Source of the DNA: Magallana gigas
Taxonomy: Eukaryota
Direction: 5' to 3'
Assembly: GCF_963853765.1 (NCBI RefSeq)
Contig: NC_088859.1
Coordinates: 8,866,001-8,930,000 of the forward strand
Length of the DNA stretch: 64,000 bases
The notes under the pieces are model-generated. The model was not told where the DNA came from. It did not search any database and worked only from the letters and a program-made list of their open reading frames with translations. This document shows, piece by piece, positions 8,758 through 57,855 of this stretch (its first letter is position 1; each line of letters begins with the position of its first letter). The position numbers and the translations under genes are program-made.

Positions 8758-10780
8758 ATGTCGAGAGCGAGCTTAAAAATGATCCAAAGAAAAGTGCAGC
8801 GACAAGCATTGCCACAAGGTAAAGTACATGTTTCAAAATTTCAGTATTAGAAATAACATTGATTCATTCATCCGACAAACTAGATTCGGCGAATGGTAGT
8901 CATTTTCCATGAACAATCATTCTTATAACTGTAAGAGTTAAATTATCATGATCCACAGATATAAGTTATATGAAATAGACCAAAACAGAATGGTTGTACA
9001 GATTTAATATATTCCAGCGGTCAGACTTGTTGTCCACTATTTTCTTTGTTAACGTTGTGTAACCGTATCGATATGAAATGAACTTATTTTTTTATGTTTG
9101 ACAGATACTAGTATCTGAAGTAAACACTAATATACATGTTTGTATCAGATATGAAATATTTAAACCTTTAAAATAAGAAATAAAGAGAAATTAAGAAACC
9201 AGCAATGGTCATATAAAATCATGATATTCTCTCTTGTTAACAGTGACTCATTTCAATTTTCCCGAGAGCTCCTTGTCCGACTGGACTGCGCAACATGTGT
9301 CGAACTTTTCTTCAAAACAATTGTCTGACCGCGTGAGATACCGGAGCAAGAGAATGATACTGGACATCATAGGAGTCGGTCTGATTGGGTCTACAACATC
9401 CTTCTCCAAAACAATTCAACATTTTGCAGAAACAACTGACAGAATCAGCGACAAGGAGCCGGCGCTTATTTGGGGAACGTCTAACAAACGCACTCGACCA
9501 GGTATGGCGGCGTTTATAAACGGATCCAATTGTCATTCGATGGACTTTGACGATACTTGGCACCCTGCTACTCATCCCAGCAGCCCTATTCTCCCTGCCT
9601 TGTTTGCACTGGCAGACTTTCTACCAGAACAGTACAAACCATCGCTTGAGGACATTCTTGTAGCGTTTAACTGTGGAGTCCAAATACAAGGAGTTTTATT
9701 ACGGTGTTCATTGCAGTCTAATAATATTCCTAACAGGTACCGTTCTCTAGCTAAGAAAAATTATTATCTCAGAAAAGAATAAATATATTATTAACAAACA
9801 ACTGCAACATGACATTTTTAAAGACGGATTTTCAAAATATGTTTATTTTCAGATTACATCCCCCAGCAATAGTTGGTGTAATGGGAAGTGCTGCTGCCTC
9901 TGCGAATCTTTTAGGTCTGGAACCCAAGAAATGCCTACACGCATTATCTATTGCAGCCTCGTTTGCTGGTGCTCCAATGGCAAATGCTGGAACCCTTGCC
10001 AAACCTTTACATGCTGGCAAATCAGCCCGATGCGGGTTAGAAGCAGCTTTTCTGGCAGATCAAGGAATCGAAGGAAACGAGCGTATTCTTGACATGGAAT
10101 CTGGCTTTGGGGCATTTTTCACCGACTATGATCCATCCACTTTTTTTCAAGAATTACAAACTTCTGAAAACCTAATTCTGCACCACCAGGACATTGCTAT
10201 CAAAAGTTATCCCTGTCATCTTGGGATGCACTGGGCCATCGAGGCATCACTTCACGTCAGAAAACAAATTGTAGATCTTTATGGAAACATGGATGCCAGT
10301 TTTGTAAAATCCATTGAAATCTTTGCTCCAAAATCCAAATATATTAACAGACCGGTACCATCTTGCGAACACGAGGCAAGGCATTCGTTTCAATTCACTA
10401 CCAATTCAGCATTGATAGACGGAAAAGTATCTCCTGAAACTTTCGTCTTTGGAAATATTGAAAAAGAGAGAAAAGAATTGTTCACTTTATTACAGAAGAC
10501 AACCATTGTTCACAGAGCCGACAATAAGCCTTGCTTTGACACAATGTACGTCGAAGTTACTGTTACTCTACAAAACGGAGAGAAATTTTCTGCCAGATGT
10601 CTTGAACCAAACGGACATTGGAGAAAACCTTTAACAGACAAAAGTTTGAAAAAGAAGTTTTTAGCAAACTCAAGGTTACTTCCTGAACACCAGCAGACGA
10701 AAATCATTAAACTTGTTAGCAAGATGTCATCTTGTGATTCGACTGATGGTCTGCTGGAGTTACTTAGAACGAACATATAA
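8758..10780 (+). CDS. ACOD1: cis-aconitate decarboxylase (IRG1; MmgE/PrpD family), about 493 aa, 3 coding exons
   Basis: Exons 8758-8818, 9244-9736 and 9853-10780 join in frame at GT-AG junctions (1482 nt). Motifs DFDDTWHPATHPS, RLHPPAIVG, AGAPMANAGTLAKPLH, IKSYPCHLGMHW and KYINRP match vertebrate ACOD1, including the active-site Asp/Thr/His/His/Lys/Lys/Tyr positions. The basic N-terminus MSRASLKMIQRKVQR resembles a mitochondrial leader. An acceptor (TTGCAG ending 8726) suggests an unlocated upstream UTR exon. Confidence 0.95.
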
Positions 10781-11656
10781 CTGTCATAGAAGATTCACTG
10801 ACTTTAGAAAATAAAACTTGATAAACTCTTTTGTGCCTGTAAAATGTTTGTTTTATTATGATTTTTATTGTTACAAAAAAAGTCATGGTTATCTGTGTGC
10901 ATATAAATATTCGGTGTTTTCTTATTGCATTACATTTATATTGTCTCATTGAAATGTATATCGTTAAGATTACTATCATTCATCTTTTTATTTTGAATAT
11001 TCTAGATTGTTTAGAAAATTGTTTTAGATGTAACAATATAAAATTCAATCGTAAAATACTTTTATTTACTTTAACTTAAGCAAGGAAAGCGTTTGGTATG
11101 ATTTTAATAAAAAGATTTCAATCTTCAATCCGTTAACAACACTTTTTATTATGTTTTACTGCTTGTAAATCAGAAAGCTCAAAATGGCAATATTGATTAT
11201 TGTATACTTGGAACTCTCTCTGAAAGGTTGTAAATTGTAAAATATGAAATAAGAAATGAACATTGTAAACAGTATCAGAATAAAATGTACTAGAGGGCGA
11301 TCTGGCCCTTTGTACATTCATGCGGTATAGGGCAGAAAGACCTGTGACTGTGACTATTTATAGAAGCAAGTCCTTCCGCATAGTATCGCACTGTATTTCG
11401 CTTTTTATATTTTCTATAATCATATTTGTCAAATCCTATTATATTCGTAAATTGCAGATAAATTATGACTTTGAAATGTAATATATACATATATTACATA
11501 TATTTTACAATAAATCTTTACATAAGAAATATGATAAATTCGCACTGTTAAGATATATGTGTGTAATATCTACTATGAATATAATGATATTACTTTATTT
11601 ATTAACTTTCTTTTGTAAAAATATAAACGTATATGTATCATCATTTTTTGGTACAG

Positions 11657-56700: not shown

Positions 56701-57855
56701 AAAATATGTTAACTTTTCTTAAGCCTGAATACTCAATGCGAATACTGATATCTACCAACATAAATTTTCATTAGCGTTTAATATGTTACTGGAGTTTTAT
56801 TTCACGCATCTCTTCCTCCAAAACATGCAATGGCTCCGTTATCTTATTAATTTGCGATAAATAAAAATGTGCATATATAATAAATGATGTTTAATAAAAT
56901 TAACATATGCAGAATTCCTACTTTTCGTTTATAACCAACATTCTCAGCTTAGTAGGAGAGGATATCCATAATTACATTAAAACATTTAAACATACAAGTA
57001 CACGTTACAACTGCTAAACAAGAAAAGTAATTGAGCTGGTACGGGTAGTTCTAACTTGTAACCTACACGTACAAGTACACGTACACGTTGGTCTGCTAAA
57101 CCTCTCTAATGTGTACGTAAATCGACGCAGTTTTGTGACATGAATTTATTTTGTTAATTCCAAATAAATGGCAAATTTCTTATCAATTTTCATGCAAATG
57201 AAGTTTAAAATCTATATAACGTATCACAATAATACATTCACTCATCAAAAAGATTTTGTTTGTTGTAAAAAGCTACACGTACGTGTAGACGACACTCTAC
57301 AAGTTTAGAGAACGTGTAGAAACCATGTCGTCACAAAAACTGATGACGTAATACGCGAAGAATTTAGGTGATTCACCGAGTTCACGTACACGTACCCGTA
57401 CACGTTTGAAATCTCAACCTCTCTAATAAAGTTATGTACTTACATCTACCGAGTTAATTTTTCTTACTTTTTACGATCAATTTATTAAAAGAAAGGTGTA
57501 AATATAAACAATTAAATGTTTTCTTTGATGATTCATGCATGTTATGAAGGTAGCGATCATTGTAGAAAAAAAAATAACGTAACGCAGATTATGTTTTTCT
57601 GCAATGTCGCCACCTCCATATTCCGCATAAATCACCAAAAAGTTTAAATGACACCTACTGCTTTCCATAGCTTTAGTATCATAAACTACAAAGAGAAAGT
57701 GAAAAATCAATGTGATCCTTTCCTGAAAGGGAATGCAAACTACCTGTCTCAATAAAATATATATAACAATGTATCTATAAAATATCTATCATTTATGTAC
57801 ATACCTTGCAAAAAGAATTTGTCGCTGATCTGAAAATTGGAGTCAGTAGATTCAT
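53726..57855 (-). CDS. GLOD5: Glyoxalase domain-containing protein 5 (VOC family), about 158 aa, 4 exons, mitochondrial-type leader
   Basis: Exons 57855-57805, 54786-54643, 54537-54382 and 53851-53726 splice in phase 0 (477 nt). [50 protein letters not shown] and [31 protein letters not shown] closely match human GLOD5. Exon 1 ([17 protein letters not shown], donor GTATGT) is my best choice but is less certain than the other three. Confidence 0.93.
55020..57427. mobile_element. Cluster of nested, tandem and inverted MITEs (TIR AATAGAGAGGTTT..CCAACGTGTACG) in GLOD5 intron 1
   Basis: Full copy at about 55459-56061 and an inverted full copy at 56508-57110. Partial copies at 55020-55115, 55130-55458, 56070-56250, 56391-56470 and 57280-57427. 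The twin ORFs 55808+ and 56573- in the track reflect the inversion. Confidence 0.85.

Follow-up and report, generated by a model that had tools for sequence, protein, structure and literature searches.

An ACOD1-linked pair of SatP/Ato-YrdC fusion genes in the oyster Magallana gigas and its possible coupling to itaconate handling

The genes around paleo-IRG1 (pIRG1), the invertebrate form of ACOD1, and around vertebrate IRG1L have been described as a synteny block with VOC, YrdC and 2-oxoglutarate (2OG)-Fe(II) oxygenase genes close to the decarboxylase (Szeligowski et al., bioRxiv 10.1101/2022.06.17.496652, Fig. 2). Here we analyse the same neighbourhood in 64,000 nucleotides of Magallana gigas (assembly GCF_963853765.1, contig NC_088859.1, positions 8,866,001 to 8,930,000 of the forward strand), hereafter the window, which holds ACOD1/pIRG1, a PhyH-type oxygenase gene, two divergent genes, A and B, that each fuse SatP/Ato repeats to a YrdC domain, and a GLOD5-like VOC gene (Table 1). 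In the published block the neighbours are labelled by Pfam domain only and the channel part of the 'YrdC' gene is not recognised; it also lists a GAT-domain gene, and none is seen within the window. The architecture of A and B is that of the family reported by Ghasemi et al. (bioRxiv 10.1101/2025.05.26.656167), in which three six-helix Gpr1/Fun34/YaaH (Ato) units and a C-terminal Sua5/YciO/YrdC domain form one polypeptide. That family falls into two clades, a dimer was proposed to form a six-unit ring, and the paper makes no connection to IRG1 or itaconate. The synteny and the fusion architecture are each already published in preprints; what appears to be new is their combination, namely that the 'YrdC' gene linked to IRG1 encodes a SatP/Ato-type carboxylate channel, that it is paired with the itaconate synthase gene and co-induced with it, and that PhyH and VOC genes lie next to them. 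Our literature search found no paper joining the Ato-YrdC family to IRG1, nor any with both itaconate and GLOD5.

Two microbial systems place comparable functions next to one another. The itaconate cluster of Ustilago maydis (Tad1/Adi1, Mtt1, Itp1, Cyp3, Rdo1) likewise has synthase, oxygenase, VOC-type protein and carboxylate transport side by side, with Cyp3 making 2-hydroxyparaconate and Rdo1 proposed to open it. The protein families are, however, unrelated to those of the oyster, the VOC fold possibly excepted: Ustilago uses a P450 where the oyster has PhyH, an MFS protein and a mitochondrial carrier where the oyster has a SatP-type channel, and a trans-aconitate decarboxylase where the oyster has an MmgE/PrpD-type cis-aconitate decarboxylase (CAD), and its cluster lacks YrdC. 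The Ustilago chemistry is proven, and that of the oyster locus is putative. The PA0878-PA0886 operon of Pseudomonas aeruginosa also contains an MmgE/PrpD protein (PA0881), a small VOC protein, PA0880, which is a 2-hydroxyparaconate lactonase, and a dicarboxylate transporter. Unlike the oyster genes, this operon is catabolic and CoA-dependent (Ict, Ich, Ccl) and its MmgE/PrpD member is an isomerase and not a decarboxylase; the GLOD5-like protein and PA0880 share a superfamily.

We propose, with a probability of about 0.5, that the locus is the oyster version of an ancient bilaterian ACOD1-centred neighbourhood in which genes A and B are the oldest partners, and that it reflects a real functional coupling to itaconate handling. 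Pteriomorph bivalves also hold a small PhyH-type oxygenase gene beside ACOD1, and in the window a GLOD5-like gene follows gene B.

The gene order in other animals carries this proposal. In the gap-free assembly of Saccostrea echinata the order is PhyH(-), ACOD1(+), 16 kb without a called gene, A(-) and B(+), and a 173-kb ENA bivalve contig, whose ACOD1 groups with that of Pinctada within Pteriomorphia, has PhyH(-), ACOD1(+) and a head-to-head A/B pair about 20-30 kb from ACOD1. The head-to-head pairing of A and B is kept at two loci in Saccostrea and on the 173-kb contig. In the amphioxus Branchiostoma floridae an ACOD1-like gene (-) and a B-type gene stand head-to-head, with an A-type gene coming after the latter, and in the catfish Tachysurus vachellii an IRG1L-type gene is head-to-head, at 1.1 kb, with a B-type gene named si:ch211-153b23.3. 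In Ostrea edulis, ACOD1 and an A-type gene are probably on the same chromosome, both being on 94.4-Mb contigs. The orthologous PhyH gene of Pecten maximus lies 7 kb upstream of ACOD1 on the same strand, and the PhyH orthologues called next to ACOD1 encode 259 aa in Saccostrea and 261 aa in Pecten. Where PhyH lies with respect to ACOD1, and how it is oriented, varies between the window, Saccostrea and Pecten, yet the adjacency persists, which argues for selection on proximity and not for one fixed promoter layout. The initial annotation, made from the sequence of the window alone, had named conserved linkage as a test of its cluster proposal, and such linkage was found for two gene pairs: ACOD1 with the triple-SatP-YrdC fusion (SatP3-YrdC) from bivalves to amphioxus and teleosts, and ACOD1 with PhyH in three lineages of pteriomorph bivalves. 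The linkage is not due to chance.

In the window the two halves of the locus are separated by an N gap, 11 kb from the nearest exon of the PhyH gene and 15 kb from that of gene A. The gap is non-coding and the reading frame is therefore no issue; continuity across it is beyond proof from the window alone, and the gap-free sequences of Saccostrea and of the independent 173-kb contig both place ACOD1 and PhyH before the A/B pair, in the identical order.

The ancestry of the fusion genes points in the same direction. In a quick-search tree of the channel domain, amphioxus gene 2 falls with the bivalve A-types, and amphioxus gene 1 and the teleost genes fall with the bivalve B-types, with a Shimodaira-Hasegawa-like approximate likelihood ratio (SH-aLRT) support of 100. 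Each clade has bivalve and amphioxus members and the A/B duplication therefore appears to predate the split of protostomes and deuterostomes; on these sequences it follows that the duplication and the link to ACOD1 would date to the bilaterian ancestor. Ghasemi et al. suggested that the protostome members, which they placed inside the vertebrate clade, may derive from horizontal transfer (bioRxiv 10.1101/2025.05.26.656167). Both clades follow the species relationships and keep their ACOD1 neighbour in bivalves and amphioxus, so that vertical descent fits, and the bivalve fusion genes look vertically inherited and not horizontally acquired, which corrects the published suggestion. The same authors report the fusion family from every major vertebrate lineage except mammals, and IRG1L is reported as lost in therian mammals (bioRxiv 10.1101/2022.06.17.496652).

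Several further observations concern these species. Tachysurus CM065154.1 carries the IRG1L and SatP3-YrdC pair at least twice, at loci 73 kb apart that encode an identical 877-aa SatP3-YrdC protein; the gene coordinates of the two loci are the same, and judging by the locus tags of other identical proteins the entire unit may form a tandem array. The second head-to-head A/B pair of Saccostrea, on JAVQLB010000019.1, encodes proteins of 837 and 814 aa, with 85% identity to the first A-type protein, and is either a true paralogous locus or an unpurged haplotype. Saccostrea also has, outside called genes and in the stretch from ACOD1 to its A-type gene, two exon-like pieces (L001:20322-20951, the same as L003:22900-23055) with an identity of 66-77% to the gene A YrdC exons, probably the remnant of an extra copy that has decayed. 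Four proteins of 822-1124 aa (P0161, P0199 and P0200, from ENA contigs of 5.7-10 kb, and P0158) have SatP-like repeats and YrdC in single uninterrupted open reading frames (ORFs) on short metagenome contigs; in the tree they stand apart on a long branch of their own, and their source may be a microbial eukaryote. The ACOD1 of Polymixia was considered as evidence on IRG1L and set aside, as its neighbour is a KCTD12-like gene, which marks it as the IRG1 paralogue and makes it uninformative on IRG1L.

Expression data add a second line of evidence. In Crassostrea virginica, pIRG1 is highest in haemocytes and is induced by poly(I:C) (bioRxiv 10.1101/2022.06.17.496652). In zebrafish, a figure on Shigella infection includes irg1l, a YrdC-like gene and a PHYHD1-like gene among the host genes (PMC6980646), and irg1l, si:ch211-153b23.3 and si:ch211-153b23.5 are hub genes of one module in a weighted gene co-expression network analysis (PMC11140123). 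In a table of 18 conditions, irg1l correlates with si:ch211-153b23.3,.4 and.5 at r = 0.86-0.90, against -0.17 to 0.50 for three unrelated genes; another listed gene, sult5a1, also gave 0.91 (PMC8877790). The named orthologues of genes A and B include si:ch211-153b23.3, and the YrdC-domain neighbours of zebrafish irg1l, which the initial annotation had mentioned, fit si:ch211-153b23.3 and.4. Three published data sets support, for zebrafish, the correlated expression that it anticipated; for the oyster the evidence is the co-presence of transcripts: two RNA libraries, chosen because they contain ACOD1 and PhyH, also contain spliced transcripts of A and B. One RNA run covering the locus is labelled oyster metagenome, and two polyA runs from 2026, sampled at about 1%, gave almost no depth over the window except for a repeat near 51.06-51.10 kb. 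In the literature we found no bivalve data on co-induction of A, B, PhyH or GLOD5 alongside ACOD1, and in two bivalve transcriptome papers that mention CAD the YrdC, phytanoyl and glyoxalase genes are absent from the main text.

The ACOD1 gene is the best understood member of the locus. Its spliced model has 98% identity with a transcript-derived protein (P0012) and contains both the MmgE_PrpD_N and MmgE_PrpD_C domains. It matches the solved human and mouse CAD structures with E values of 1e-77 and 8e-36 and IDS epimerase with 2e-17, so that its nearest solved relatives are CADs and not 2-methylcitrate dehydratases or IDS epimerase. The segments HSMDFDDTWHPATHPS, HPP, TKPLH, K..P.HL and Y.NRP are conserved with the CAD structures. 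The active-site residues of human CAD, which we take from the 2019 crystal-structure work to be D93, T97, H103, H159, K207, K272, H277 and Y318, fall in columns that are identical in the oyster protein and invariant or nearly so in the ACOD1 family alignment. The basic N-terminus looks like a mitochondrial presequence. Homology and published experiments on related species support the prediction that this ACOD1 makes itaconate from cis-aconitate and is induced by immune stimuli; zebrafish IRG1L has been shown to be active, and the discussion of the same work cites a rise of itaconate in infected oysters and mussels (bioRxiv 10.1101/2022.06.17.496652). An origin of the locus from a bacterial operon is unsupported: when 185,579 prokaryotic genomes were scanned for an ACOD1 profile, only two remote loci appeared, at 25-28% identity, and their flanks contained no SatP, YrdC, PhyH or VOC match. 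The pattern scan is narrow, which makes this a weak test.

Genes A and B both match the triple-Ato-YrdC architecture. Gene A is 53% identical to PF01300-containing proteins of Ostrea and Saccostrea (776-837 aa), and the joint of its first intron is seen in an RNA-library contig. All eight introns of gene B are supported by GT..AG joints in contigs of two RNA libraries, and the channel exons and the YrdC exons are therefore parts of one mRNA. The gene B RNA contig begins near 46947, and the divergent intergenic region is likely the shared promoter of the two genes. The first intron of gene A (46273-46547) is spliced out in one RNA-library contig and read through in another; the latter has one base deleted and, 79 bases away, one base inserted (46276/46355), and could stem from a transcript with the intron retained, from genomic DNA in the library or from a divergent allele.

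The resemblance of the channel part to SatP was followed at the level of profiles and of predicted structure. A profile of B-type proteins matched residues 5-188 of the 190 residues of Escherichia coli SatP (E 4.8e-7), whereas gene A on its own gave a faint match (E 0.32). With PF01184, B-type proteins from oyster, scallop, amphioxus and catfish scored 19.9-23.8 bits in their first repeat against a gathering cut-off of 25, an Aldrovandia protein passed it with 28.3 bits, and the A-type protein P0009 had no match. With a hidden Markov model (HMM) built on repeat 2, all B-type proteins show three repeats, and in the A-type proteins, gene A included, the third repeat is matched significantly. The AlphaFold model of the Saccostrea B orthologue (predicted local distance difference test score, pLDDT, 76) shows 6+6+6 = 18 transmembrane helices and an alpha/beta Sua5-like domain, and in a Foldseek search this model matched the SatP structures 5ys3 and 5zug with TM-scores of 0.75-0.79 and a probability of 1.0, as well as Sua5/TsaC2. 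Judged from these profiles and this predicted model, the SatP likeness of the channel part is real. The YrdC domains of the two genes differ: in gene B the K-G-R (IKGRP) and S-A-N (TSANPSG) motifs are intact and align with MTH1692 and Thermotoga maritima TsaC2, whereas gene A and its oyster orthologues have K-K-Q in place of K-x-R, with loss of the arginine, and keep S-A-N. Gene A is therefore not to be filed as a threonylcarbamoyl-AMP (TC-AMP) synthase.

The evidence on the two remaining genes concerns their families. The PhyH domain (PF05721) is above its cut-off on two exons of the oxygenase gene, whose spliced model stays open and carries WHQD, LIHGS and RRCGFVIRY, that is, the H-x-D...H iron triad and the 2OG-binding arginine; no close solved structure was found for it. 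In the GLOD5-like gene the Glyoxalase domain (PF00903) matches the first core exon with 33.4 bits and the last core exon weakly, in a splice-consistent model. The name GLOD5 follows the initial annotation and a presumed resemblance to the human sequence, and we use it as an assumption.

From these data a course of events can be proposed. Upon immune stimulation ACOD1 would produce itaconate from cis-aconitate, as homology and literature indicate, and the co-regulated A and B proteins may let itaconate, or a closely related C4-C5 carboxylate, pass through a membrane, a role suggested by their family and their association with ACOD1. SatP itself carries succinate and acetate. A and B might together assemble a six-pore ring like the SatP hexamer, which is possible because both paralogues seem to have been adjacent since the bilaterian ancestor. 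The YrdC domain could perform an ATP-dependent adenylation, giving either the canonical TC-AMP or the adenylate of another carboxylate, or could serve in nucleotide sensing and regulation. More tentatively, the oxygenase and the VOC protein might modify or detoxify itaconate-type acids, by analogy with Cyp3/Rdo1 and PA0880 and with a linkage seen at the bivalve level only. The initial annotation had described the locus as a cluster that makes, modifies and exports an itaconate derivative; of this, the linkage of two gene pairs and the co-expression in zebrafish have been borne out, and the biochemical core is what we infer. A stronger version is doubtful, namely a true bilaterian itaconate cluster in which ACOD1 works with an A/B six-pore channel-enzyme that moves and perhaps adenylates itaconate, PhyH and GLOD5 produce hydroxylated or lactone derivatives such as 2-hydroxyparaconate and itatartarate, and mammals lost the whole module with IRG1L and kept a relocated IRG1.

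A number of points weigh against a functional coupling of these genes to itaconate. No PhyH or GLOD5 gene lies within 10 kb of the ACOD1/SatP3-YrdC pair in amphioxus or catfish, and therefore only the ACOD1 and SatP3-YrdC core is shown to be deeply conserved. The second A/B pair of Saccostrea is on a different scaffold, where the 10 kb examined contain no ACOD1, and in Mytilus californianus no gene is called within 10 kb of ACOD1, which is uninformative in such a large genome. Bivalves and amphioxus retain much of their ancestral microsynteny, and retention there is weaker evidence than in a teleost. This last point also speaks for an adjacency that is neutral, left over from the ancestral gene order where genomes rearrange slowly and with neither functional nor regulatory meaning, as does the empty surrounding of ACOD1 in Mytilus. 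A leftover of this kind is, however, already disfavoured and we regard it as very improbable: the pair survives in a teleost and has been duplicated there as a unit, orientation has changed without loss of adjacency, and the zebrafish genes are co-expressed. Further points concern function. The YrdC of gene B keeps every TC-AMP synthase motif, and the canonical chemistry fits equally well; and si:ch211-153b23.5, which a study in medaka placed under an autophagy Gene Ontology term, is co-induced in zebrafish with no evident metabolic role, so that the co-expression may be regional and reflect a shared chromatin domain. Szeligowski et al. saw no obvious clustering of functionally related genes in the synteny (bioRxiv 10.1101/2022.06.17.496652).

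The points on function, together with the head-to-head arrangements at distances of 0.3-2.3 kb, also favour a shared regulatory neighbourhood without a shared pathway, which we consider a possible but less probable explanation. The genes would then use common immune-responsive promoters or enhancers, laid out as divergent promoters in chordates and as a common domain in bivalves, and each would serve its own process: acetate, lactate, bicarbonate or N6-threonylcarbamoyladenosine (t6A)-type products for A and B, lipids for the oxygenase and something unrelated for GLOD5. Yet the adjacency of PhyH and ACOD1 has outlasted the changes of layout, a carboxylate channel beside a carboxylate synthase is a functional match known from the fungal itaconate clusters, and it is in mammals that the fusion family is reported absent and IRG1L reported lost. 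It is rather unlikely that the locus is instead a self-protection or catabolic module, in which itaconate is removed in the producing cell by mitochondrial efflux, activation, hydroxylation and ring or lactone handling, limiting the inhibition of the host's own succinate dehydrogenase and 2OG-dependent enzymes. Such a module would suit the presequence-like N-terminus of the window ACOD1 and the bacterial counterparts with MmgE/PrpD and VOC proteins, which are degradation clusters; a mitochondrial location has been predicted or shown for pIRG1 and IRG1L, and the same work sets out the cost of self-poisoning (bioRxiv 10.1101/2022.06.17.496652). No gene in the window, however, matches the CoA-transferase, hydratase or lyase known from the degradation route, and the N-termini of A and B have no obvious presequence on inspection of the sequence, no predictor having been used.

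Under the coupling to itaconate handling that we favour, the locus offers candidate genes for the passage of itaconate across membranes in non-mammals, for animal itaconate derivatives and for the roles of GLOD5 and of the vertebrate Ato-YrdC proteins. It would, if true, be a rare multi-family metabolic cluster in animals, and it offers a reason why mammals, in which IRG1L was lost, also lack the partners. Taken together, the hypothesis makes specific claims that can be tested at low cost, and several orphan genes would gain a function from it.

Table 1. Features of the window, with positions counted from its first nucleotide.
Feature	Position	Strand	Details
ACOD1/pIRG1	8758-10780	+	493 aa; exons 8758-8818, 9244-9736, 9853-10780
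PhyH-type Fe(II)/2OG oxygenase	14763-16533	-	~254 aa; exons 16533-16416, 16063-15859, 15321-15233, 15115-14763
Mariner-type transposase remnant	21028-22059		DDE_3 Pfam match at 21475-22059
N gap	27655-27791	.	In AT-rich non-coding DNA; interrupts no gene; flanks without exon-like ORF
ORF	34200-34478	+	HAD_SAK_1 below threshold (20.9 bits, cut-off 25.6); no neighbouring exon-like ORFs
Gene A (SatP/Ato-YrdC)	43172-46704	-	840 aa; six exons, 46704-46548, 46272-44602, 44491-44403, 43966-43807, 43726-43521, 43411-43172; three diverged SatP/Ato repeats and C-terminal YrdC
A/B divergent intergenic region	46705-47019	.	315 bp between start codons; from gene coordinates
Gene B (SatP/Ato-YrdC)	47020-51546	+	844 aa; nine exons; SatP/Ato repeats at residues ~19-150, 224-403 and 462-605, then YrdC
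GLOD5-like single-domain VOC protein	53726-57855	-	~158 aa; core exons 54786-54643, 54537-54382, 53851-53726
GLOD5-like putative first exon	57855-57805	-	Inferred from ATG and GTATGT donor only
Reverse transcriptase ORF	59851-61443		Transposon-derived

The window is AT-rich, with a GC content of about 32%, and the nearest named proteins are those of Saccostrea echinata and Ostrea edulis. The initial annotation had counted five intact genes, and the count of five intact non-transposon genes holds at the places that it gave, with no others at the present level of testing (spliced models and Pfam). The remaining long ORFs of the window are transposon-derived, belong to repeats or have no family match in Pfam, and the ORF with the sub-threshold HAD_SAK_1 match does not resemble a coding exon and is probably spurious or a decayed fragment.

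Repeats occur at several places. Just upstream of the mariner-type remnant there are a 434-bp tandem repeat (2.4 copies) and 21-bp minisatellite arrays, at 18692-19734 and 20153-20867. Inside the putative first intron of the GLOD5-like gene, near-identical inverted ORFs of 62 aa are found at 55808-55996 (+) and 56573-56761 (-), with a further inverted pair at 55996-56178 and 56439-56573; this large inverted repeat is probably a transposon. Raw RNA reads pile up at 51060-51107 with unrelated flanks on either side, the pattern of a short repeat common to many other transcripts or loci.

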